DNA of 64,000 nucleotides from Octopus sinensis (taxonomy: Eukaryota), in NCBI RefSeq assembly GCF_006345805.1, contig NC_043002.1, positions 44,330,001-44,394,000 on the forward strand, read 5' to 3'. Shown one piece after another: positions 559 through 61,945 of the stretch. The stretch's first letter is position 1; the number at the start of each line of letters is the position of its first letter. The position numbers and the translations under genes are program-made. The notes below the pieces were generated by a model that saw only the letters and a program-made list of their open reading frames with translations, did no database searches and was not told the origin of the DNA.

Positions 559-2927
559 TCGCCCTCCAGATGCCCCAAGCCATGTAGGCAAGTTTGAAGA
601 CTGCCTTATAAAAATAGAGGAAGTTGTAGTCACATTAGAACAACACATAAGTGTACTTCTTATGGGAGACTTCAATCTACCCAATGTCAGATGGCCCGAG
701 GGCCTTTCTCTCCCAGGAATGACACGATGTGAACGAGGACAGGCGAGGTCCCTCCTGAACCTCATCAACACCCTGTACATGGAACAAGTAATACTCCAAC
801 CAACCAGGGAAGGTAACACACTGGATCTCTGCTTCACAAATAATATGGATCTCATCCATAACGTGAAAGTGACACCGACACTACTCTCGGATCACAACAT
901 GGTAGAGCTGACCATGTACGGGCCAAAGGAAAGCATGGACATGCAGCCTACAAGAAACTCTCAGAATCTTTCCAGCTTGAACTTCCATAAGCAAACTGGA
1001 AACAAATTGAGAAAGAGATCCTCAAACAAAACTGGCCTGAATGCCTCTCCTCGCCAGACATCGAGGTGAAACTTCAACAATTCATGTCTGTAATGCAAGC
1101 CATATGCTACAAATGTGTCCCAGAGAGAAAGGCCACTGTACACAAGAACAAAATCCCCAGAGAGAGGAACATTTTAATGAGACGGCGTACAAAAATTTCA
1201 AATCACCTAAACAAACAAATTGAAAGCAGTGAAAAGTCCCGCCTGAAAATAAAACTGTTGGAAATTGAAAAATGTCTGCAACTTTCCCATGAAAAGGAAA
1301 GAGCAGACAAAGAAGCCTGGGCTATATACAACATAACATCTAACCCCAGAGCTTTCTACAGGTATGCCAAAGAAACGGCTACGGTACACTGTGGGAGAGG
1401 GCCACTCCTTGAAAAGGATGGCACACTCACAGAAGATCCAATGAGGGTAAGTGAAATACTTAATGAGCAATTCAAAAATGTTTTCACTCCACCCCTTGGG
1501 CATTTCCAAATCAGCAATCCAACTGACTTCTTTACCACTGCAGATATAAAATCAGAGGCAGCGATGATTGATTACATCAATATAAAGGAAGACGATGTAA
1601 TAAAGGTTATAGATGAAATGAAAACAAACTCAGCTACTGGCCCCGATGGATTCCCGGCAATCCTCCTAAAAGTATGTAAGAGAGTCCTAGCAAGACCACT
1701 GCAGTTCCTCTTTCAGAGCTTCCTTGCAACTGGCAAACTTCCAAGAAAACTGAAGGAAGGTAAAATATGCCCTATTCATAAAGGATGGTAGCAGAGCGGA
1801 GGCCAAGAACTACAGACCTATCTCTCTGACCTCACACATCAGCAAGGTCATGGAACGAATAGTCAGAGGAAACTGATCACCTTCCTTGAAGAAAAATGAC
1901 TTGCTACCTGACACCCAACATGGTTTCCGACTGGGAAGAAGCTGCTTAACTCAGCTCCTACAACACTATGACTGGGTGCTGAAACGACTGCTCAACCACT
2001 CAAATGTGGAAGTGATATACCTCGACTTTGCAAAGGCCTTTGATAAAGGTCGATCATGGAATGATATGTCACAAACTGCGTGATCTTAGCATAGTTGGAA
2101 AAATGGAGAATGAATGCTTCATGACTTTCTGAAGGATAGAAGTCAGGTGGTAGTTAGTAGCCAATGTGGCCATTCCATATCACGCAAACTAGTGAGTGGG
2201 TTCCAAGGGCACTGTTTTGGGACCACTACTGTTCATAATGGCCCTCTCAGACATGCCCTCAGCCCGCAGAGAGCCACGATCACACGTTATGCAGATGATA
2301 CAAAAGTTTCACAGGCAATACAGAACCCTGAAGACACTAAACACCTGCAATTGAGCTGGACAAAATATACAAGTGGGCTGAAAAGAATAGCATGCAGTTC
2401 AATGCTGAAAAGTTTCAAGCTTTATGATATCAGCGTGCAAAACTAAATGCAACACCCAATGAATACACGGACCAGGAGGAATTGCAATCCAGAGGCACAA
2501 TCAGTGCGTGACCTGGGTATTTACATGAGTGATGACGCAACCTTTCTGTACATGTTGCTAAATGGCAATGAAATATAGACGACTGGCACGGATGGATTCT
2601 TAGAACCTTTAGAACAAGAGAACAAGAAACCATGATGGTCCTCTGGAGACACTTGTCCTAAGCCACTTTGACTATTGCTCTCAGCTATGGTCACCATCCA
2701 GTGTCAAGTTGATCACAGAACTTGAGGCGATCCAACGTAGCTACACGAAGAAGATAGCCTCTGCGCAAACATAGAAGCTACTGGGAAAGACTCAAGAGAT
2801 TAAAACTCTATTCCTTGGAGCGTAGGCGAGAAAGATATGCCATAATATACATCTGGAAGATCCTGAAAGGACTTGTCCCAACTTTGGCATCGAGAGTTGC
2901 ACAAATGCCAGAACTGGGCGCCACTGC
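559..2927 (+). mobile_element. 5'-truncated, frameshifted CR1-group LINE ORF2 (AP-endonuclease C-terminus + reverse transcriptase)
   Basis: APE motifs MGDFNLP, TLDLCFTN and SDHNMV. RT motifs [40 protein letters not shown] and YADDTK, plus C-terminal ERRRERYAIIYIWKIL. Split over several frames. Confidence 0.9.
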
Positions 2928-3027
2928 NNNNNNNNNNNNNNNNNNNNNNNNNNNNNNNNNNNNNNNNNNNNNNNNNNNNNNNNNNNNNNNNNNNNNNNNN
3001 NNNNNNNNNNNNNNNNNNNNNNNNNNN
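2928..3027. other. Assembly gap (100 N)
   Basis: Run of N; the round size suggests a placeholder. Confidence 0.99.
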
Positions 3028-4594
3028 TTTCTCGCCTACGCTCCAGGGAATAGAGTTTTAATCTCTTGAGTCTCTCCCAGTAGCTCATATGCTGCACAGA
3101 GGCTATCTTGTTCGTGTAGCTTCGTTGGATCGCCTCAAGTTCTGTGATCAACTTGACACTCGATGGTGACCATAGCTGAGAGCAATAGTCAAAGTGGCTT
3201 AGGACAAGTGTCTTCCAGAGGACCATCATGGTTTCTTGTTCTCTTGTTCTAAAGGTTCTAAGAATCCATCCAGCCAGCCGTCTACATTTCATTGTCAGTT
3301 TAGCAACATGTACATGAAAGGTCGCGTCATCACTCATGTAAATACCCAGGTCACGTACTGATTGTGCCTCTGGGATTGCAATCCCTCCGGGTCCAGTGTA
3401 TTCATTGGGTATTGCATTCAGTTTTGCATGCTGATAGTATAAAGCTTGAAACTTTTCAGCATTGAATGCATGCTATCTTTTCAGCCCACTTGTATATTTC
3501 GTCCAGCTCACATTGCAGGTGCTTAGTGTCTTCAGGGTTCTGTATTGCCTGTGAAACTTTTGTATCATCTGCATAACTTGTGATCGTGGCTCTCCGCGTG
3601 GCTGAGGGCATGTCTGAGAGGGCCATTATGAACAGCAGTGGTCCCAAAACAGTGCCCTGTGGAACACCGCTCACTATTTGCGTGCTAATGGAAGTGGCCC
3701 CATTGGCTGCTACCACCTGACTTCTATTCTTCAGAAAGTCATGAAGCCATTCTCCTAGTTTTCCAACTATGCCAAGATCACGCAGTTTGTGACATATCAT
3801 TCCATGATCGACTTTATCGAAGGCCTTTGCGAAGTCGAGATATATGACTTCCACATTTGAGTGGTTGAGCAGTTGTTTCAGCACCCAGTCATAGTGTTGC
3901 AGGAGCTGAGTTAAGCAGCTTCTTCCTGGTCGGAAACCATGTTGGGTGTCAGGCAGCAAGTCATTTTCTAAAGGAAGGTGATTAGTTTCCTTCTGACTAT
4001 TCGTTCCATGACCTTGCTGATGTGTGAGGTCAGAGAGATAGGTCTGTAGTTCTTGGCCTCCGCTCTGCTACCTCCTTTATGAATAGGGCATATTTTACCT
4101 TCCTTCAGTTTTCTTGGAAGTTTGCCAGCTGCAAGGAAGCTCTGAAAGAGGAACTGCAGTGGTCTTGCTAGGACTCTCTTACATACTTTTAGGAGGATTG
4201 CCGGGAATCCATCGGGGCCAATAGCTGAGTCTGTTTTCATTTCATCTATAGCCTTTATTACATCGTCTTCCTTTATATCGATGTAATTTATCGTCGCCGC
4301 CTCTGATTCTATATCTGCAGTGGTAAAGAAGTCAGTTGGATTGCTGATTTGGAAATGCCCAAGGGGTGGAGTGAAAACACTCTTGAATTGTTCATTCAGT
4401 ATTTCACTTACCCTCATTGGTTTTCCTGTGAGTGTGCCATCCTTTTCAAGGAGTGGCCCTATCCTACAGTGCACCGTAGCTGTTTCTTTGGCATACCTGT
4501 AGAAAGCTCTGGGGTTAGTTTTTATGCTGTCTATAGCCCAGCCTTCTTTGTCTGCTCCTGCCTTCTCATGGGAGAGTTGCAGACAATTTTCAAT
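3028..4594 (-). mobile_element. Second copy of the same CR1-group LINE, inverted
   Basis: ORFs 3968-4762, 3456-3959 and 2792-3337 contain RT motifs (SGVPQGTVLGPLLF, YADDTK). About 17 mismatches in a 180 bp comparison with 1265-2831. Confidence 0.92.
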
Positions 4595-4682
4595 ATACAT
4601 ATATATATACATATATATATATACATATATATATATACATACATATATATATACATATATATATACATACATATATATATAC

Positions 4683-4717
<35 letters not shown>

Positions 4718-5253
4718 CATATATAAACATACATATATATATACATACATATTAATATACATATATATATATACATTATATATATCATATATATATACAT
4801 ATATATATCATATATATATACACCTATATATACAATAATATATATACATATATAGATACATATATATATATAGTAACATATATATATATACATATAAATA
4901 TTATATATATATATATATATATATATGTGTATATATATATATTACATACATATATATATATGTATATTTATATATACTGTATATATATGTATATAATATG
5001 TATATATATGTATATATATATGTATATAATGTATAATATATATGTATATATATGTATATATATGTATATATGTATATACATGTATATATATGTATATTAT
5101 ACATATAATACAATTGTTTGTTTGTATTCCACCTGCCTTCGTCTTTTGTGTTTATTTCCGTAAACTGCCTTCGTCTTTTGTCTATTTTCATAAAGCTTCC
5201 CGTTATAATATATATATATATATATATGTATAATATGTATATATATATATGTG

Positions 5254-5296
<43 letters not shown>

Positions 5297-5320
5297 TGTA
5301 TGTATGTATGTATATATAAC
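4595..5320. repeat. Compound (TA)n/(TACA)/(TATG) microsatellite
   Basis: Direct reading; a short non-repeat island lies at ~5111-5200. Confidence 0.95.
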
Positions 5321-5547
5321 AACATCATTAGTATTATTTGTGTTTGGAAAGAGAGAATGTTTGTTCGTGGCCCGTAAGTTTTCTTTAAAAGTTGTTTTAT
5401 CATTTGGTATTCGGATTTTTGTTGGACTCTTTACTAGATATACCAGCTCCCTTTGCTTACTGTGAAGCGGTTTGGCGAAAGGTCTATTAATTGAGGGCGA
5501 ATTATGTGACACAAAATTTGAAAGTTAATTTTTCAAAGCAAAAAAAT

Positions 5548-6420
5548 ATGACTTCTCAAATTGAGGGAAATGATGACTGTTGGAACAGCCATTATGACAT
5601 AACTTTGTCATCATATCTTGATCTGGTCGAGAGACGCATCGTACACAACAACAAGCAGCAGCAACAACAAGAGCAACAACAGTTGCAGAAGCGGCAGCAG
5701 CAGTAATGATCACGATAAATTTGAAAATGACACAAGTATGATCTCTACCACCACCACCCCAACACCATCACAAATATTAATACAACGGAAACACGGCCGC
5801 TCTTCTTTCCTAACAAAATGGGAACGGCTAAGCGCAGGTGAATCGAAGAATGGAAATAGTCGACAAGTCAGAAAAATGTTTGGTGACAGCAGAGCACACT
5901 TTATAAAGATTGGCAGAATCGTATTTCTAAACACACCCAAAAACGAATTAGTATATACAAATGTATTTCAACAAAAAAAAAAACAAAACAGAAGACTGGA
6001 TCGAGCCAAGGATCAGATCGAAAAATGCCAAGGGCCACTCTGTGGGATAAAAACTATTGCACATTTGGAGTTAGATACACAAATGAAGGACCAAAGAAAG
6101 TGCAACAACAACCTTCAGAAGGGAAGAATTGATTAACATAAAGGTACAAGAGGCACACCAGAATTGAACATCTCTTATCTGGTGACTGGCATAGAAAACA
6201 AGATAATTCTTCTCCAAGTGCACGAAATCTAAAAGAAAAATTGGTTGGGCACGGGAGCAACAGTACCAAAAACATCAACAGCAATCACCAGTACCATGCA
6301 CGGAAAAAGGAATAACAAGACCTGCACCATGGCAATCGCGAGATGCCTCGTCCACAACGAAGTTATCGTGCAAGTCACCAATGATCTCTAGGACGGTTAT
6401 CGCCGTCCCGACGAATGAAC
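5548..6420 (+). pseudogene. Candidate degenerate low-complexity (Q/S/N/T-rich) exon
   Basis: ATG at 5548, CAG/CAA/AGC runs and long overlapping open frames. Ends at a consensus donor AAC|GTAAGT (6421). Needs frameshifts or stop readthrough; no recognisable domain. Confidence 0.25.
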
Positions 6421-6959: not shown

Positions 6960-7172
6960 AGGCAACCAACTGGCAGAAACTATAGGATACCGGCCAAAAT
7001 GTTTAGCGGCACTTCTTTATCTACGTTGCGTTCAAACTCCGGCGAGGTCATCTTCGCCTTTCATTGTTTCAGGTTCGATAAAATAATACCATTTGAATAC
7101 TGGGATCGATGTAATCGACCTAACCGTTTCCCGCAAAAATCGCTGGCCTTGTGCCAAAATTTGAAACCAATA
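6960..7172 (+). mobile_element. SINE family B, degenerate
   Basis: CTGGCAGAA..GTTCAAA..GATGTAATCGAC..GGCCTTGTGCC matches the copy at 51702-51934. Confidence 0.75.
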
Positions 7173-7754
7173 TTAAAAATTGACTTCTTTGGTGATTCCA
7201 GAAATAAAATTGTTTAGGTCGACTGAATTGTATTATTTATAACTACAATGTACTTTTTATTAACTTAATTCAGTAACTGGATGTCTGCGAAAATGTAAGG
7301 AATTAAGAGAGACTGTTGATGAAATATTTTCATTGAAAATTTATGGTCAATCAAAAGACCTAAGAAGAAAAAAAGTTCAAGCATAAAAATCAATTTAAAA
7401 TCTTTTTCCCCACAAAAGCTGATGGACACATGGGAAATCATGATGAATGTGAAACAAATTTCATTAAAAGATGTATAATGAAAGCTTGGACATGCAGCGA
7501 GTTGGATCCACATGAATGCACAACGGTTTTGCACAGCACCTGGCAACTGATTTAACAGTTTACGAATATATGACATACTAGAGATGAACAGGTTTATACG
7601 CAGTAAATTACTGTGAAATAAAGAGATTATGATATACCAGAAGTCTAGGTGTTCATAAAACATAAATATCACATTGTTTATATAAAACATAAATATCAAC
7701 ATAGATTTCACATATTTATACATATATTTATAACCCTCGATAAAGAATTATAAA

Positions 7755-11931: not shown

Positions 11932-11951
11932 AGTATATATATATATATATA
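11847..11951. repeat. (TA)n/(GA)n microsatellite
   Basis: Direct reading. Confidence 0.95.
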
Positions 11952-12175
11952 ATTAGAAATAATGAATTTCTAAGTGTCTGAACGAGACTTGAGCGGTGGT
12001 GGAGCGATAAAGTGGTTGTATAAAGTCAACAAAACGTGACAGTCCCGTAGAGGGAATTACAACAACGCTATATAGCCCTAGGAAGCATCGACGCTTCCTG
12101 TCGGCTTTGACACATTTTCTGTGTCCTTAGATTCGCAAAGTGGAGGCAAGCGGCCCCACCAGCTAGGAACAGCAA

Positions 12176-12221
12176 CCTGAATACATGCATGATTCTGGGT
12201 ATTGCCCATCATCAGTTCAGG
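12176..12221 (-). ncRNA. Type I hammerhead ribozyme, A15.1>U variant
   Basis: Minus strand: CCUGAA CUGAUGA UGGG-CAAUA-CCCA GAAU CAUGCAUG UA UUCAGG. Confidence 0.8.
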
Positions 12222-12259
12222 GTAGCGTATCCGTTTCTCTTTATTATAGACACAATGGC

Positions 12260-12651
12260 CTGATTACATAGAGGGGACAAAACAAGACAAAACGGGAACA
12301 TAAAACAAATGATGTATGATTGATGGAGTGATTCATAATTGATGGTAATGAAGCTGTGAAACGAACAGAGAATTTTTTCATTAATTCTCAATACCATCGG
12401 GTCTCACTGTGAGGCGAAACCGCGATGGTCTTCTTTATCAATATCGTAAACTTTATCATTAATTGTTCACATTAGTCTTTGTATTTTCCTTTTCTATTTT
12501 ATCTTTTTTTCCAGCTTTACATTTTCCTTTTTTTTTTCACATATTAAATTTCACAGACAAACAACACAAGTTCAATTCTCAGTTCATTTGCAGTTCAATT
12601 CATGTTTTTTTTTTAAACAATTAGTTGCGTTACACTCATAATTATACTTAC
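12260..12651 (-). other. Putative GT-AG intron in element 3' UTR
   Basis: ACG|GTAAGT donor at 12651; polypyrimidine tract and ATCAG| acceptor at 12260. Confidence 0.55.
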
Positions 12652-12682
12652 CGTCTACGTTTTTGTTCCACATTTATTATTG

Positions 12683-14012
12683 TTACATTTCTCTTTCTTC
12701 TCGTTCTCTTTCTTTTCTTGTGTTTCTCTTCTCGAGACCACTGCTTCGATCGTCTCCGTTTGTGTAATCTGAATTTTTTCCCGACTGCAAATACCTCTCT
12801 TCCATCTGTTCTTTTTCTTTGAGCCTAAACCACTGCCACACTTCTTCGCTCTGCTGGTTCATCGTTCTCAACATATTGTCCATATATATTCTCTCAGTGT
12901 TACCGTCCTGGTTTGTTATATTCTCTGCCATTCCACTACTTTTTTTCCGTTTCTTCTAAAGTTGGTGACTTTTTCAAATGCGTCTCTTCCATCTGATCTC
13001 TATCTTTTAGCTCACATAACTTTAAATTTTCTCGCTCTATTTCATCTTCGTTTCGCAGTTTCATCTCTCTCTCTATCCCTTCCATAGTTGGCTCCTCGGG
13101 GTTACCGTTCTGAAAAGTTAAATTCTCTGCCGCTCCTTTACTCTTTTTAGCTTCTTCCAAAGTTTGTGACTTTTTACGTTTTCTCTTCCTTCTCTTCACC
13201 ATATTCGTTCTATTATTGTTCTCCATCTTCTCTTCATCGGCTGCTTTTTCTTCCACTGTTGTTTCCAACCTTTTCTCTACTTCTGTATTCGGGCATTTCC
13301 TTCGCATATGCCCCCTTATGCCACACAAGTAGCATTTTGGGAGTCTTCCCTGTAGCACAATCACCAACTTTTTACCGGTCGGTAATTCTACCGTTTCCGG
13401 TATTTCCAGATAGTATTCATCGGTTATAGCGCAAATTGCTTCAATTTCATAACCCCAAAAATTCAAACATTGTGATTTACTCACTGTTAGAACGTTTAAC
13501 TTTGTACTTCTTTTCTTCAAGTTCTCTCCGAAGATTCCCACTATTACCCATTCGGGCTCTATTATGGGTGGGATTCTTCCAACTCTAATTTTCCCCAACT
13601 TTTTTCCTGGTTTGTCGGGAATGAGAGTCCAACTATTTCCTTCTATCACTTGGTCATTCTTCTTTGCCGCCTCCACATTTTTAAATGTAATATTTATCGT
13701 GCCGTATTGGCTTCCTCTATTTATGAAAACCACTCTATCCATACAGCATGATACCATTGTTTCTATTTGAAATTCTGGTGCTATTTCAATCCTCCTGGAT
13801 TCGTTGGAGAATGTTCTGTATACTCTTGTTAAATCCCTTAACATTTTCTTTTTCTCCTCCGGCATTACAAGCTTCACATTCGTTGCTTCTATTTCTACTT
13901 TGCTCAAGTATCTCTTCATCTTTTCAGGGTCCCAATTCAACGACTTCAGTGTTAGCTTTCTTAATTTCTTTTTTTCCGGGTCTTCCGCTGTCGCTTCAGC
14001 GTAGCTCTTCAT
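12683..14012 (-). CDS. Tx1/L1 ORF1-like nucleic-acid-binding protein with CCHC zinc knuckle; 358 aa as assembled, 442 aa if one A is removed from the A7 run at ~12940
   Basis: ATG at 14012 (MKSYAEATA). Central RRM-like region, IPETVELPTGKKLVIVLQGRLPK, then CYLCGIRGHMRRKC (CX2CX4HX4C) and a charged tail. Stop at 12936; continuation frame 12931-12683. Confidence 0.8.
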
Positions 14013-14184
14013 TTCCAATTTCTTCTTTCACCGACAAACGTCGGCCTCACACGAACTTTCGAGCAGCTTCTCACAAACGGAGATGAACGAAGCAGTAGAC
14101 TCGAGAAGAGAAACACAAGAAAAGAAAGAGAACGAGAGAAAAAAGAAATGTGACAATAATAAATGTGGAAAAAAAACCTAGACG

Positions 14185-14595
14185 GTAAGTATAATTATGA
14201 GTGTAACGCAACTAATTGTTTAAAAAAAAATAATAATTGAACTGCAAATGAACTGAGAATTGAACTTGTGTTATTTGTCTGTAAAATTTCATATGAAAAA
14301 AAAAAAAGGAAGATGTAACGCTGGAAAAAAAAAAGATAAAATAGAAAAGGAAAATACAAATACTAATGTGAACAATTAATAAAGTTTACGATATTGATAA
14401 AGAAGACCATCGCGGTTTCGCCTCACAGTGAGACCCGATGGTATTTAGAATTAATGTGAAAAAAATCACTTTACGTCTCACAGCGGGAGTGAGTCGAACA
14501 GTTTCATTCTCATTAATTATTAATCACTCCATCAATCATACATCATTTGTTTTATGTTCCCGTTTTGTCTTGTTTTGTCCCCTCTATGTAATCAG
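14185..14595 (+). other. Putative GT-AG intron (second copy)
   Basis: ACG|GTAAGT at 14185; TTTTGTCTTGTTTTGTCCCCTCTATGTAATCAG| ending at 14595. Confidence 0.55.
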
Positions 14596-14633
14596 ACCAT
14601 TGTGTCTATAATAAAGAGAAAAGGACACGCTAC

Positions 14634-14679
14634 CCTGAACCGATGATGGGCAATACCCAGAAACATGCATGTATTCAGG
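14634..14679 (+). ncRNA. Type I hammerhead ribozyme, U4>C variant
   Basis: CCUGAA CCGAUGA UGGG-CAAUA-CCCA GAAA CAUGCAUG UA UUCAGG. Confidence 0.82.
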
Positions 14680-14844
14680 TTGCTGTTCCTAGCTGGTGGG
14701 GGTGCTTGCCTCCCCTTTGCTAATATAAAGACACAGAAAATGTGTCAAAGCCGACAGGAAGCGTCGATGCTTCCTAGGGCTATATAGTGTTGTTGTAATT
14801 CCCTCTACAGGACTGTCACGTTTTGTTGACTTTATACAACCACT

Positions 14845-14850
14845 ATATAT

Positions 14851-15282: not shown

Positions 15283-15365
<83 letters not shown>

Positions 15366-15713
15366 CTCAAGGCAGTTACAATACCAGTGATCGTAGGAGC
15401 ACTAGGAATGATCAAGAAGGGAACCGAAAATTATATGAGAATGATCCCTGGCTTACCATCCCCCAAGAAGTGCAAAAGATTGTCTTAACTGGTACATCAC
15501 ACGTATTGAGAAGAGCATTGTCGATGTGAGAACTATTACTACCCATGTATTTTAATTTAACTTTATTTCTTTCAAAAAAAAATTGAACGAACTAGTGAGT
15601 TTAGTTTAATGACCTATACTATAAGTTTCTTTGCCCTAGGAGTCGGGAAGACACTCGGCAAAAAATGGAAGCAAATTTGAAAGAAGAAAAACCCATAAAT
15701 AATGATAATAATG

Positions 15714-16277: not shown

Positions 16278-16500
16278 TTCAATACAGTAACCATCAAAGC
16301 GTCGCAACAAATCACAGCACATACCCAAGGTACACAGAGCTGCGCTCGGTAGTGAAGTGAAAGCATGTTATAAAAATAAAACTACTGAATAATAATAATA
16401 ATGATAATAATAATAATAATAATGATGATAATAATAATAATAATAATAATAATATTAATAATAATAATAATAATAATGATACTAATAATAACAATAATAA
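15283..16500 (+). mobile_element. Stack of three different R4/Dong-type 3' ends separated by (TAA)n tracts
   Basis: 15366-15700 reads [15 protein letters not shown]. 15790-16230 reads [10 protein letters not shown]. 16280-16390 is a 3' UTR shared with 23307 and 29651. Each is followed by (TAA)n. Confidence 0.8.
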
Positions 16501-16501
16501 T

Positions 16502-17960
16502 TCTTTCTTTATTGACCACCAGGGCCGAACACAATGCATAGAGGAGGACACACAGACACGGGACAGTGAGTTTAAACGTGTAAACTGCCAACAAATACAA
16601 CAATTAATATATAATTCCCTATTGTGGGTGATTAACCAAGACGCGACCAAAACAACCTCACCCAATTTGGGCCCTTAGCACCAAGGCACCTCAGATAGGC
16701 ACCCCTCTCCTCCTCACTCCATCCGGCCTACATGCGCACACTTAGTGTAGGCCCACCCACATGGGCTATCCTTGCTACATTCACCCACTCTTCGACAAAC
16801 CTATTGGGTGATAGCACCACCCTCTGCAGTCTCACCTTCCTTCTCAAGTGGAACATGAAAAATCAATGAGGCCTTGGCCAAAGAGAAAGGTACCTGTTTT
16901 CAACCCTTTCAATCGTGTCCCCCGTACAACCTCTTCCGTCATAGCCACCAGACAGAGAAAAACTGCCTTTCTTTCTCAGCCAAAGGAAGGAGGCGGGGCA
17001 ATCTTCACAATAAAATCGGACGATAGCTGAACCCGTCCAACACGTAACAATAACTGTCCCACGATGCTCCACAAGTCAGCAATGAACGCGCTGGGAAAGA
17101 CGCGTTTAGCTTCTAATATCCGTGGCCCTGCTTATTGAGCCTACCTAGGTCGACCATACAGATTACAAATTTGTGGTCTGTATAGCTGACAAATTCAAAT
17201 TGTGAACAACTTATGCTATCCTTATCACTTTGCCTACAAAGTACCCTGTCTAGATAAGATCTGGATGACCAAATGCCATTGCCTATGTTCACATTGAAGC
17301 TTTCGGCAAATCCAGTCTGAACCTGTCAACTAATTGGAAACGACTGAGCAGGTTAGCGAGGCTTGCGCACCCCACTTTCTTGTCGGCTAGCTCTACCCAG
17401 TACCTATGTACATCCAAGATGGCTTTCCAGTCGCCCATTAATTCTAAGGAGCGAGACGTCCCAAAAAAGACCTCCAAACGGCTAAAGAAATTCGGATGTC
17501 CCACTCCGGTCGGTGCGTACACAGCGACCAGTCTAAAGGCACTGCCTCCGTTTATCATTCACGTCCGGGACCAATATCCTACCTTCCGGGTTCAGAAAGA
17601 CCGACCGTATCTCGAGATCCAGAACTTTCCTGAACAGCACCCCTACCTCTACCCCTATTCCCAGTCGACCAAGAGATGCAAAGATCTCATAATCGTCGAA
17701 AATGGGTGGTAAAGCGCAGGCGCGCGTGTCCGTGATCCTGGTCTCACTGGCAGTTATTACGCGTAAATTTTCGCCACCTGAGGTCATTAAGCAAGCAAGC
17801 TTGCTTCCATGACGACCCCCAGGCCGCGTACTTTTATACTGCCCACTCTAAGCAATACCATGTTGGACGATGGGAATTTGTGAAAATAGGAGCGAGTTAT
17901 TTACCAAGGCTATGTAGGGGAGTGGGGGTGCCTACTCTCTCCCTCTCGTTGGATGCTGGT
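16502..17960 (-). mobile_element. Tx1-clade LINE deletion derivative (ORF1 end, APE, C-terminus, 3' UTR; RT missing)
   Basis: MVLLRVGSIKVRGL start, then SETR, FRLVAVYAP, MGDWKAILD, DHKFV and GHGY*KLNAS, joined directly to ADLWSIVGQLL..KIAPPPS..FVEEWVNVA. Confidence 0.8.
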
Positions 17961-35405: not shown

Positions 35406-36089
35406 GTATAAATCTTAGCTCTCGGTAACAATACTTCCTCTGCTGCTAATATATAATTTTTGATAAACTTACTGGCAAATTGTGACAGCAATGCCTGTTC
35501 TGGGACTGGTGAGGAGATAAATTGCTGCTATCTCTAGAGGTCGAGTGTCCATCATGGACGAGACCAAGGAAGGTTGAAATCATGTGTTCTAGTGGTCTCA
35601 GCGCTAGAGAAGACGGTGTTTCTCTCATGCTATCTACCACAGTATAGTTTCTTCTAGCAGAATATCCAGGTTTAAGTGGAGTTAAATAGATGTTAGTGGC
35701 AGGGCAGAATTTGCGAACCTCCACAAGATCCAATCCTTGTTGCAGTGTATTGACTTATGTGCCTCAATGATGCTGACGGCATGCCAGCGGAGTGCAACAC
35801 TCAAAATAGGTTGTCCCATACTGGACAGGTTAAGGAAAGAAGCTACACTAATATGGACCACTTCTTGCAAAAAGTATAATGGGTTCGCATATGGTCAATA
35901 TCCCTACCAAGAACAAGGCAAAGTTACAGAAATATTGATGATAATTCAACATAAACAAGACCTGGAAGAGGCAGGCTTTCTCTCAGAGGGTGGATTACTT
36001 TGAGAGTGGCTGTGAAGAATGCCGAAAGTCGATAGCAGCGGAGAAAAGTCGTCGATAGTCTATGCTTCATACGGAGCGAAGGACTTAAT

Positions 36090-36520
36090 TTCAAACTTTG
36101 ACAAAAGGTCAGCAATTTCAGGAGAGGCGATAAATCGTTTACATCGACTCCAGTATTCAACTGGTGCTTATTTTATCGACCTCTGTCTTCAATGTCACTC
36201 ATTTTATAAACTTCGGTGGAATTTGAATTGAGAACGTAAAGACGGGGGAAATTCCGCTAAGCCCGGCGTGCTGATTCTGACAGCTGCCGCCTTCGGTAAG
36301 TAGTAATGGGCTCAAATTTTGGCACAAGGCCAGCAATTTTTGAGGAGGGGTTAAGTCGATTACATCGACCCTAGTACTCAACTGTACTTTATTTTATCGA
36401 TTCCGAAAGGATCAAAGGCAAAGTCAACCTCGGTGACATTTGAACTCAGGACGTAAAGACAGACAAAGTGTCGCTAAGTATTTTGCCCAGCATGCAAACG
36501 ATTCTGCCAGCTCGTCGCCT
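36090..36520 (-). mobile_element. Two tandem SINE B copies
   Basis: 36090-36292 and 36306-36520; the second has the 13 bp TSD TCGGTAAGTAGTA (36293-36305, 36521-36533). Confidence 0.85.
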
Positions 36521-51499: not shown

Positions 51500-52830
51500 G
51501 AATAAATGCTGCAATGGCCGGGTCGTCAGGAACTAAAGCGCCAAACCCACAAAGAGTTCTCAGCGAAGGGTATGGTCCCGTTGAAGGGCAGATGAACTCA
51601 TGAGAGTTAACAGCTATTCATCAGAGTGTATATGAGGGTAGGTTTGGACTCACTGAGCCATGGTTGGCAATGCAACGTGTGATAGTGTTGTGATAAAAAT
51701 AAGGCGGCGAGCTGGCAGAAACGTTAGCACGCCGGGCGAAATGCGTAGCCGTATTTCGTCTGCCGTTACGTTCTGAGTTCAAATTCCGTCGAGGTCGACT
51801 TTGCCTTTCATCCTTTCGGGATCGATTAAATAAGTACCAGTTACGCACTGGGGTCGATGTAATCGACTTAATCCGTTTGTCTGTCCTTGTTTGTCCCCTG
51901 TGTGTTTAGCCCCTTGTGGGTAGTAAAGAAATAGGTGTTATGATAAAAATACTGGTGATTGCCTCCTTATAAATATTACCTCAAAATGAGTGACGTCAAA
52001 TTCAAGTAATAATCTTAACTGCGTAAACGGGACCAGAACTGCTAACAAGTAAGTTGTTGTGCACGACAAGCAAAGAGTGTCTGATAATGTACGGTAAGTC
52101 GTCATCAAACCATTGATCAGGACCAGAATCGAAGTCAAAAGTGCAAATGGAAAAACATGAAATGGGAAAAAATAGGTAAACATGATTGTGATTGTATGTT
52201 ACTGAGAAGTGAACCAATTAAAAGAGGTTTCATGAAATGAATGAAGGGAATATGAGATAAAAGGAAGGTTTTGAAGCTTCTTACCAACGATTTATAAACC
52301 AGGGAAGGGTAGTCGTATAAACGATTGGTTTACAAGATCGGAGTTTGAAGAAATTCACAGAAGAATAAGAAAATAAACAGGAAGAGAGTGGAACAACATT
52401 AGCAGAAAGTGGTAATGAAGGGATAAGAGATGAAGAAAATTAAGAGAAAAATCGCCATGTGCTTGAGAATGCCTAAGAAGTAAATAGTGAAGCTAATTTA
52501 GCTGGACAAGTAGCAGTAAGTGTTGCACAAGAGTGGATGATGAAGAAAAGGAGATTCTAGAAATGGTGCGCATGAAAATGCAAGGTACGACCAATGGAGT
52601 TTCATAAAATGTAAGGTATATGGACAGAAGAAAATTAAGGAGCCACATTCAAAATAAATGCCATTTTTGAGCTTGACTACAAAACCATTCATTAAAGAAA
52701 CAAACCAGCTACTGCTAATGTTTTAGCTGACATAAGAGGAAGACTGTTGAAGAAGAGGACGGGGAAGTAAAACAAGGAACTAAATAGGAGGAAGAGGATG
52801 CGAATGCAGCTGCTAAAAATACGGGTAAAA
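51500..52830 (+). mobile_element. Old R4/Dong-type 5' ORF remnant interrupted by a SINE
   Basis: KRGFMK, QRFINQGRVV..DWFTRSEFEEI and TETNQLL remnants. Confidence 0.5.
51702..51934 (+). mobile_element. SINE family B, full length
   Basis: 17 bp TSD GTGTT(G/A)TGATAAAAATA (51685-51701, 51935-51951); tRNA-like B box GAGTTCAAATTCC. Confidence 0.93.
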
Positions 52831-61283: not shown

Positions 61284-61945
61284 AGGTGAGCTGGCAGAAT
61301 CGTTAGCATGCCGGGCGTAGCGGTATTTCGCCTGCCGCTACGTTCTGAGTTCAAATTCCACCGAGATCGACTTTGCCTATCATCCTTTCGGGGTCGATTA
61401 AATAAGTACCAGTTACGCACTGGGGTCGATATAATCGACTTAATCGGTTTGTCTGTCCTTCTTTGTCCTCTCTGTGTTTAGCTCCTTGTGGGTAGTAAAG
61501 GAATAGGACGGACAAACAGATTAAGTGGATTATATCGACCTCAGTGCGTAACTGGTACTTATTTAATCAACCCCGAAAGGATAAAAGGCAAAGTCGACCT
61601 CGGTGGAAGTTTGACTCAGAACATAAAGACAGACGAAATTCCGCTAAACATTTCGCCCGGCGTTCTAACGATTCTGCCAGCTCGTCGCCTTAGAAAGGAT
61701 GATTATTATTATTATTATTATTGATATATGCGAGATGGCAGAATCGTTAGCATGCTGAACGAAATGCTTAGCGATATTTTCGCCATCGCTACGTTTTTGA
61801 GTTCAAATTCCACCGACTATAACTTTGCTTTTCATCCTTTTGGGGTCAATAAATTAAGTAACAGTAAAACACTGGGGTCAATGTAATCGACTAGTCCTCC
61901 GCCCAAAAAAAATTTCAGGCCTTGCGCCTTTAGTAGAAATGATTA
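61284..61945. mobile_element. Three SINE B copies (+ 61284-61507, - 61508-61691, + 61730-61945)
   Basis: Similarity to 51702-51934. Confidence 0.9.

Follow-up and report, generated by a model that had tools for sequence, protein, structure and literature searches.

A retroelement in the genome of Octopus sinensis combines a protein of the kind encoded by the first open reading frame (ORF1) of long interspersed nuclear elements (LINEs) with a 3' region that carries a type I hammerhead motif. It lies in a 64,000-nucleotide stretch of contig NC_043002.1 (RefSeq assembly GCF_006345805.1, forward-strand positions 44,330,001 to 44,394,000; hereafter the window), where positions 11950-14843 form a single insertion inside a (TA)n microsatellite. 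We interpret the element, with a probability of roughly 0.6, as a non-autonomous half-LINE/Penelope chimera of octopods that is mobilized in trans by the reverse transcriptase (RT)-endonuclease of a Penelope-like element (PLE). From 5' to 3', its body consists of a 5' untranslated region (UTR), a type I ORF1 with a coiled-coil tail, the equivalent of the last few codons of ORF2 and a LINE 3' box with AATAAA. Fused 3' of this LINE body are a type I hammerhead, a terminal module of ~165 nt and an optional tail of ~60 nt. The family probably borrows the RT of another element; the proposed role of a PLE enzyme is read from the scars that insertions have left.

Layout of the insertion

The insertion is flanked at both ends by (TA)n-rich microsatellite sequence. 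Its sense unit, truncated at the 5' end, lies on the minus strand and is joined by a more strongly truncated, inverted copy of its 3' 772 nt (Table 1). Read in the sense of the ORF, the insertion opens with this inverted copy (14843 to 14072), which meets the sense unit head-to-head at 14071/14072 with microhomology of up to 6 nt. The sense unit starts 59 nt 5' of the ATG, runs via the ORF into the 3' region (12764 to 12012) and finishes with an extra 62 nt (12011 to 11950) that are not in the inverted copy. The two arms (12007-12764 and 14072-14848, inverted) are 91% identical by blastn with gaps included, or 95% per aligned column, and no third copy of the arm sequence was found within the window. 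An earlier note on this DNA, made from the sequence alone, had placed the element at 12011-14844; because the 62-nt tail precedes the left arm, the true span is 11950-14843. The second, 5'-truncated copy of the 3' region that the note described at 14071/14072 is borne out by the arm alignment. Its statement that the element lacks an RT, endonuclease, integrase or recombinase also stands: zf-CCHC is the sole Pfam domain of the element, and the other ORFs of at least 60 amino acid (aa) residues have none.

A locus on O. vulgaris chromosome OX597819.1 (L002) is orthologous to the window, with ~96% identity over 15 kb, and contains the same insertion. Judged from its sequence, the window copy is old, decayed and dead, because its ORF is frameshifted near 12936, both of its ribozymes are mutated and its 5' UTR is truncated.

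Recurrence across loci and selection

The same architecture was found at five independent loci, namely the window, L001 (OX597823.1) and L004 (OX597820.1) with 85-90% nucleotide identity, L003 (OX597833.1) with 43% aa identity in the ORF, and L006 (OX597815.1) with 46%; L006 also holds a second, heavily truncated insertion (2880-3145). These loci represent three subfamilies at 43-46% aa identity. The shared order is ORF1, a TAG stop codon, a GTAAGT...CAG/CGGG segment (slashes mark boundaries throughout), a 3' box of the type seen in LINEs and short interspersed nuclear elements (SINEs), a type I hammerhead and the terminal module, and the TAG-GTAAGT junction is kept at all of the loci. Units are ~2.2-2.4 kb long with ORFs of 358-440 aa. 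The junction of ORF and hammerhead, which the earlier note had allowed might be unique to the window, is therefore a recurrent one. The note had also called for a check for linked ORF2, PLE RT or GIY-YIG sequences: no such sequence was detected at the five loci by Pfam and a six-frame GIY-YIG motif search, an ORF2 with apurinic/apyrimidinic endonuclease (APE) and RT domains is absent from all five, and when the window and the loci were translated in six frames, a regular expression for GIY-YIG matched nowhere.

Between subfamilies, the proportion of nonsynonymous differences (pN) is 0.27-0.33, whereas that of synonymous differences (pS) is 0.74-0.79, with synonymous sites saturated; the ORF1-only form has therefore diversified under purifying selection. 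The corresponding rate ratio between close copies (dN/dS 0.64-1.07) is uninformative, because copies decay neutrally after insertion. Single copies do decay: the ORF of the O. vulgaris ortholog is frameshifted.

A predicted type I LINE ORF1 protein

The ORF of the window copy encodes 358 aa counted from the ATG and has been shortened by the frameshift near 12936. The out-of-frame continuation, an 82-aa ORF at 12683-12931, matches the in-frame C-terminus of gene model P0002; the ancestral C-terminus was rich in K and E and contained an internally duplicated module of ~190 nt. Since this continuation once belonged to the ORF, the point at which the inverted arm breaks off lies in ancestral coding sequence, which is what one unit shortened at its 5' end would show.

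The closest protein matches of the ORF are O. vulgaris gene models. A word-indexed homology search gave very few relatives, and an exhaustive HMMER search was needed to recover 192; all ten named relatives that we looked up are octopod (O. vulgaris, O. sinensis, O. bimaculoides and Argonauta hians). Relatives with 26-32% identity lie directly 5' of an ORF2 with Exo_endo_phos, RVT_1 and zf-RVT domains at three LINE loci, L005 in O. sinensis, L007 in Argonauta and L008 in O. vulgaris, and the L007 ORF2 gave a full-length alignment to human LINE-1 ORF2p (E = 4e-42). Profile evidence within the ORF itself comes from the zinc knuckle, for which zf-CCHC (PF00098) scored 21 bits against a Pfam cut-off of 20.8; profile matches of the knuckle are retroviral nucleocapsid knuckles, and in a profile search of PDB sequences with the ORF the knuckle alone was matched.

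An AlphaFold2 model built from an alignment of 76 family members reached a mean predicted local distance difference test (pLDDT) score of 84.6, whereas a single-sequence run (mean pLDDT 41) was discarded. In the model, aa 62-132 and 137-220 each fold as a beta-alpha-beta-beta-alpha-beta domain, accompanied by the knuckle and by long helices at the C-terminus. Its best Foldseek matches in the PDB are all proteins with tandem RNA recognition motifs (RRMs), with probabilities of 0.9-0.99 and modest E-values. On this predicted fold, the ORF product is a type I LINE ORF1 protein with two RRMs and a CCHC knuckle. The published definition of this type calls for at least one RRM immediately 5' of a CCHC knuckle (PMC4120745), and since the modelled order agrees with it, the earlier description of the ORF as LINE ORF1-like was right; the RRM-RRM-CCHC relatives that precede L1-like APE-RT ORF2s at L005, L007 and L008 point the same way.

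Two further sequences related to ORF1 were observed. A weak ORF1-like fragment at window positions 5906-6259 (plus strand), with 27% identity to the L005 ORF1 over 149 aa, is unrelated to the element. At L010 (O. sinensis CM016886.1, 7001-7846), gene model P0018 belongs to the ORF1 family and has a degenerate knuckle, PKFHLCLEPGHIKKNC; no ORF2, hammerhead or arms lie nearby, and the gene is possibly a truncated LINE or a domesticated copy.

Organization of the 3' region

Downstream of the ancestral TAG, the 3' region comprises a GT...AG segment with a hairpin, a 63-nt box, the hammerhead and the terminal module of ~165 nt, which contains the hairpins GACACAGAAAATGTGTC and GGAAGCGTCGATGCTTCC. 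The box, which reads ...TGTTTTGTCCCCTCTATGT..GCCATTGTGTCTATAATAAAGAGAAA, is internal and lies ~70 nt 5' of the predicted ribozyme cleavage site. It resembles the extreme 3' ends of L1-like LINEs at L005, L004, L007 and L008, as well as the end of an abundant SINE-like repeat; z-scores of the alignments are 7-10, none of 500 shuffled sequences aligned as well, and nhmmer gave weak matches (E = 6e-4 to 0.07). Because the LINE's own 3' box is kept internally, the element is an ORF2-deleted LINE that became fused to the hammerhead and terminal module. Thus, the LINE origin proposed earlier for a captured ORF holds, whereas the idea that an ORF alone was captured does not.

The GT...AG segment (298-299 nt) is present in both arms, as the earlier note had reported. 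In the sense unit it begins 6 nt past the ancestral TAG, the donor being at most 15 nt from the stop codon. The donor ACG/GTAAGT and the acceptor TCTCRCAG/CGGG are conserved in three subfamilies (window, L001, L003, L004 and L006), whereas the interior diverges. We regard the segment as a candidate retained intron. In the inverted copy, 18 nt just beyond the acceptor (14484-14501) have no counterpart in the left arm.

Within this segment, a hairpin carries the motif CGGTTTCGCC, which resembles the last codons of LINE ORF2 in L005. All subfamilies keep the hairpin that surrounds the motif CGGTTTCGC(C), although with different partner strands, at window positions 12393-12430 and 14406-14443, L001 ~6973-7010 and L003 ~7340-7375, and it is duplicated in L006 (~7405-7430 and ~7560-7590). 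It could serve as a promoter element or a protein-binding site or could be what is left of the ORF2 end. We also considered the hairpin at 12393-12430 (antisense ...CUGUGAGGCGAAAC...) as a hammerhead and rejected it, as it lacks A6 and helices I and II.

The SINE-like repeat mentioned above is ~230 nt long and occurs at window positions 51778-51933, 7031-7166, 36086-36444 and 61350-61888 and at many sites in L004. Its 3' tail (..TTGTTTGTCCCCTCTGTGTTTAGCCCCTTGTGGGCAATAAAGAAA) matches both the 3' end of the L1-like LINEs and the internal box of the element, so that the repeat and the LINEs look like a LINE-SINE partnership with a shared tail. Rfam called no tRNA or SINE family at these sites.

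The hammerhead motif

Both arms carry a type I hammerhead motif, which we spotted by eye and with a descriptor of our own. The sequence reads CCUGAA-CUGAUGA-UGGG-CAAUA-CCCA-GAAN-CAUGCAUG-UA/UUCAGG, with a helix I of 6 bp, a helix II of 4 bp and a helix III of 1 bp capped by the palindromic loop CAUGCAUG. Canonical metazoan type I hammerheads have the same 6 bp and 4 bp, a helix III of 1-2 bp and a short palindromic loop, and are thought to act as dimers (PMC4209133). The type I assignment made earlier therefore agrees with the helix layout in both arms, whereas the "minimal" form of PLEs does not apply, the helices being of canonical length. Each copy is also mutated. The window copies have one core substitution each, GAAU for GAAA on the left and CCGAUGA for CUGAUGA on the right, and the O. 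vulgaris ortholog has GAAU in both arms; both window ribozymes are probably inactive, to judge by these changes.

A paralog at L001 (7202-7243) has the fully canonical core CUGANGA ... GAAA ... UH together with helices I and II. With a strict descriptor, which demanded the core, UH and minimum lengths of 4 bp for helix I and 3 bp for helix II, this site and only one other were found in ~213 kb searched on both strands. Comparison of the window-type motif with the L001/L006-type motif revealed three to four compensatory pairs in helix I (U-A to C-G, G-C to A-U and A-U to G-C; in L006 also C-G to U-A) and one in helix II (G-C to A-U), counted by script because MAFFT misaligned the hammerheads in loop III. 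The loop is palindromic in both types, CAUGCAUG in one and CUAG in the other.

A side observation concerns the 5' end. At L006 (~5590-5640), the full-length sense copy begins at an ACTAGT palindrome, within ~6 nt of where the hammerhead is predicted to cleave. This position hints that ribozyme cleavage may define the 5' end of the RNA.

Insertion scars and 3' ends

Inverted partners are not confined to the window. They retain ~772 nt in the window, ~170 nt in L001 (5044-5216), ~270 nt in the main L006 insertion (5331-5600) and ~95 nt in the small L006 insertion at 2880-3145. In addition, L001 and L006 have a direct piece (5217-5316 and 5634-5785, respectively), a partial copy of the 3' terminus that precedes the 5' UTR as a pseudo-long terminal repeat (pLTR). 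The 3' ends fall into two discrete classes 55-62 nt apart, a short one ending ...ATACAACYAC and a long one ending ...TTAGAAAT(N8-14). Each of three paired insertions (window, L006 main and L006 small) has one short and one long end, and at tandem junctions the long form runs directly into the 5' UTR. Tracts of (TA)n or (CT)n(TA)n hold nearly all of the ends; one of those at L006 borders on (TG)n-like sequence.

This set of scars matches the one described for PLEs, in agreement with the earlier suggestion that an inverted, pLTR-like arrangement is a PLE feature. PLE insertions have pLTRs, an inverted 5'-truncated copy, a tail that is often present at one end only and microsatellite targets, notably (TA)n (PMC8557442). 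The optional tail is attributed to two RT start sites (PMC11167929, PMC8557442), and the PLE protein nicks and extends both DNA strands (PMC11167929).

A variant arrangement was seen at L004 (7529-8285), where the partner is joined tail-to-tail, not head-to-head, across short (TA)n/GCAATAATAAA. Both copies there lack one and the same internal stretch, reaching from the middle of the candidate intron to the 3' box, and therefore derive from one template.

Proposed mobilization and alternative explanations

Under the interpretation as a half-LINE/PLE chimera, the element would be transcribed and its ORF1 protein would coat or chaperone its own RNA. A PLE RT/GIY-YIG protein supplied in trans would nick both strands of a (TA)n tract. 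Reverse transcription would be primed at one or other of two internal start sites close to the RNA's 3' end, producing short and long ends, and priming from both nicks would give a sense copy and an inverted, 5'-truncated copy joined head-to-head. The hammerhead may trim multimeric or read-through transcripts. O. vulgaris has ~30 recently active Penelope families and 13 L1-Tx1 families (PMC13282606).

Several points weigh against this interpretation. Rfam reported no hammerhead at its gathering threshold or, for the region itself, at E<=10; thermodynamic z-scores of the ribozyme are unremarkable; and the hammerheads of the window, L003, L004 and L006 have core or stem defects. P0002, the sole gene model that splices here, uses another donor and a distant acceptor and lends no support to a 298-nt intron. 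The tail, at ~60 nt, is longer than the 30-40 nt published for PLEs. No PLE was detected in ~300 kb of fetched octopod DNA (regular expression for GIY-YIG; Pfam for large window ORFs), and a LINE ORF2p could be the real partner, given the LINE ORF1 and 3' box that the element retains. Finally, the sample consists of five to six insertions.

A LINE ORF2p as partner is the core of the strongest rival, namely a half-LINE comparable to mammalian HAL1: an ORF1-only L1/Tx1 derivative mobilized in trans by the parental ORF2p, with the hammerhead and terminal module as an incidental 3' transduction or a processing accessory. ORF1-only LINE derivatives have arisen repeatedly (PMC5753468), active L1-Tx1 families exist in O. 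vulgaris (PMC13282606), and both the ORF1 homology to proteins encoded 5' of L1-like ORF2s and the retained ORF2-end remnant and LINE/SINE box are what such an origin would leave. We nevertheless consider this explanation unlikely, as the box is internal and forms the terminus in 0 of the 14 distinct 3' ends examined. Moreover, two end classes, a one-sided tail and a 3' end duplicated in both arms are not produced by plain 5' truncation or twin priming of the L1 type; the two autonomous LINE copies checked (L005 and L007) have no inverted terminal arms; and the flanks of L005, the only LINE for which they were inspected, are (TTA)n, whereas the elements sit in (TA)n.

Less probable still is that the copies are deletion derivatives of an unseen autonomous element with two ORFs, either a PLE with an upstream gag-like ORF or a hammerhead-bearing LINE. 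Only a handful of copies have been sampled, and Chara does have a PLE in which a zf-CCHC ORF lies upstream and a canonical hammerhead at the 3' end (Chlamys-2_cBra, PMC8557442). Yet all three subfamilies, as far apart as 43-46% aa identity, lack ORF2 and share the same stop-codon/GTAAGT junction and downstream order, with an ORF under purifying selection, which implies long propagation in the ORF1-only form; the remnants of the ORF2 end and 3' UTR are, furthermore, LINE-like and not PLE-like. The transposon-dense surroundings and the microsatellites on both sides might suggest that a fragment of a LINE ORF1 became nested by chance between a pair of PLE pLTR fragments, or that a host gene lies among repeats, but this explanation is effectively refuted by the contiguity of ORF, 3' region and hammerhead at five independent chromosomal loci in three subfamilies and by the arm truncation within ancestral coding sequence, and the ORF is not a conserved host gene because its ortholog in O. 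vulgaris is frameshifted.

A more far-reaching version of the chimera interpretation is conceivable, if doubtful. The family might be a protein-coding counterpart of retrozymes, in which an RNA of ~2.3 kb is excised by hammerheads from tandem or read-through transcripts, possibly circularized, chaperoned by its own LINE-derived protein and copied by a PLE RT-endonuclease; it would then be a stable, selected hybrid parasite built from modules of two classes of retroelement, and evidence that a LINE ORF1 protein can work in a replication cycle of the PLE type.

Table 1. Positions of the parts of the insertion in the 64,000-nucleotide window.
Feature	Position	Strand	Supporting observation
Tail, optional 3' extension beyond ...ATACAACCAC; abuts (TA)n	11950-12011	-	Same sequence after CAACYAC at L001 and L006 tandem junctions; ends L003, L004 and L006 copies
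Left arm, 3' region of the sense unit; duplicated inverted at 14072-14843	12012-12764	-	
Terminal module 3' of the hammerhead; ends ...GTTGACTTTATACAACCAC	12012-12175	-	Conserved in L001 and L006 (three places); more diverged in L004
Hammerhead motif, type I, left; predicted cleavage after 12182; A15.1 = U (GAAU)	12176-12221	-	
LINE/SINE-type 3' box including AATAAA	12234-12296	-	Likeness to L1-like LINE 3' ends
GT...AG-bounded segment, 298 nt; candidate retained intron	12354-12651	-	Boundary consensus conserved across loci
Very stable hairpin inside the GT-AG segment; carries CGGTTTCGCC	12393-12430	-	-22.9 kcal/mol, z = -6.3
Out-of-frame rest of the ancestral ORF C-terminus	12652-12935	-	Matches in-frame C-terminus of P0002
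ORF1-type protein gene, 358 aa from ATG	12936-14012	-	
CCHC zinc knuckle CYLCGIRGHMRRKC	13287-13337	-	Pfam PF00098
Two RRM-like domains, aa 62-132 and 137-220	13353-13829	-	AlphaFold2, Foldseek
5' UTR remnant, 5'-truncated; full copies at least 220 nt longer	14013-14071	-	Comparison with L001, L004, L003 and L006
Inverted 5'-truncated second copy; short 3' end without tail; abuts (TA)n	14072-14843	+	
GT...AG-bounded segment of the inverted copy, 299 nt	14185-14483	+	
Hammerhead motif, type I, inverted copy; core U4 = C (CCGAUGA)	14634-14679	+	

Neighbouring elements

Other LINE sequences surround the element. The earlier note had cited 16502-17960 as a local Tx1 LINE in which an ORF of this type precedes an APE-RT ORF2; the sequence there has no ORF1 detectable by tblastn and is an internally deleted remnant of APE and the C-terminal part of the RT protein. 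Specifically, the L1-like remnant at 16731-17640 (minus strand) has APE joined straight to the last ~120 aa of ORF2. It is surrounded by (TAA)n arrays (15283-15370 and 16382-16603), and together with the related L005 in (TTA)n this suggests microsatellite-specific insertion of L1-like LINEs. At L008 (O. vulgaris OX597840.1, 2043-15025), full-length L1-like units of ORF1 and APE-RT ORF2 are repeated head-to-tail at least three times with a period of ~5.28 kb, an array that may have arisen by insertion into the LINE's own copies or into a repeated target.

Two other LINE fragments were noted in the window. One, at 662-1791 (plus strand), contains Exo_endo_phos_2. The second, at 2792-4762 (minus strand), contains RVT_1 with motifs of the jockey/CR1 type and an assembly gap of 100 N near 2900-3000; its RT (3456-4762) has motifs that read as LINE-type and jockey-like.

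Implications and comparison with known systems

Non-autonomous retroelements normally parasitize their own parent class: SINEs and HAL1 exploit LINEs, and PLEs are the presumed helpers of retrozymes. The octopus family descends from LINEs, with a selected ORF1 and a 3' box, yet has a hammerhead and scars of the PLE type. If our interpretation is correct, this shows that LINEs and PLEs have exchanged modules in nature. The family would then be a tractable substrate for studying how a PLE RT-endonuclease recognizes the 3' end of its template, whether an ORF1 chaperone helps, and what role genomic hammerheads play. Automated pipelines that annotate repeats in cephalopod genomes may class such copies as L1, Penelope, unknown or host genes; several are currently annotated as "uncharacterized protein".

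Among known systems, endonuclease-containing PLEs (Penelope/Poseidon, Neptune, Nematis, Hydra and Naiad) and non-autonomous elements derived from them share with the octopus element a hammerhead motif close to the 3' terminus, partial tandem (pLTR) junctions, a head-to-head inverted 5'-truncated copy, an optional tail at one end, microsatellite and especially (TA)n targets, and a candidate retained intron. The octopus element differs in having neither a telomerase-like RT nor a GIY-YIG endonuclease, its sole ORF being a LINE-type ORF1, in having a canonical 6 bp/4 bp hammerhead in place of the minimal PLE form, and in having a LINE 3' box 5' of the ribozyme.

Metazoan non-LTR retrozymes are similarly non-autonomous, with a canonical type I hammerhead, a short palindromic helix III and a proposed dependence on PLEs (PMC7229834; 10.64898/2026.07.22.740005). 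They are non-coding repeats of 170-400 nt that form tandem arrays and give rise to small circular RNAs (PMC7229834, Cervera and de la Pena 2020; and the 2026 preprint of Li et al.). The octopus unit, in contrast, is ~2.2-2.4 kb long and protein-coding and occurs as single insertions with at most partial tandems; no multi-copy tandem array of hammerhead units was present at any locus examined.

HAL1 of mammals is likewise a non-autonomous LINE derivative that kept ORF1, lost ORF2 and arose repeatedly, but it has an L1 3' end and insertions of the L1 type, whereas the octopus family ends in the hammerhead and terminal module and leaves scars of the PLE type. The octopod L1/Tx1 LINEs (L005, L007 and L008) have a homologous RRM-RRM-CCHC ORF1, a homologous 3' box with AATAAA and an association with microsatellites; the element differs from them in that it has no APE-RT ORF2, its 3' box is not terminal, its target is (TA)n and not (TAA)n, and inverted and tandem partners are present. 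In Chlamys-2_cBra of Chara braunii (PMC8557442), too, a gag-like CCHC ORF and a canonical 3' hammerhead occur together in an element of the PLE type; it is, however, autonomous (RT and endonuclease) and comes from a green alga, and LINE ancestry of its ORF has not been reported. Full-text literature searches gave no account of an element that encodes a LINE ORF1 alone, carries a hammerhead and inserts in the PLE manner. The components of the element and both kinds of parent are already known.

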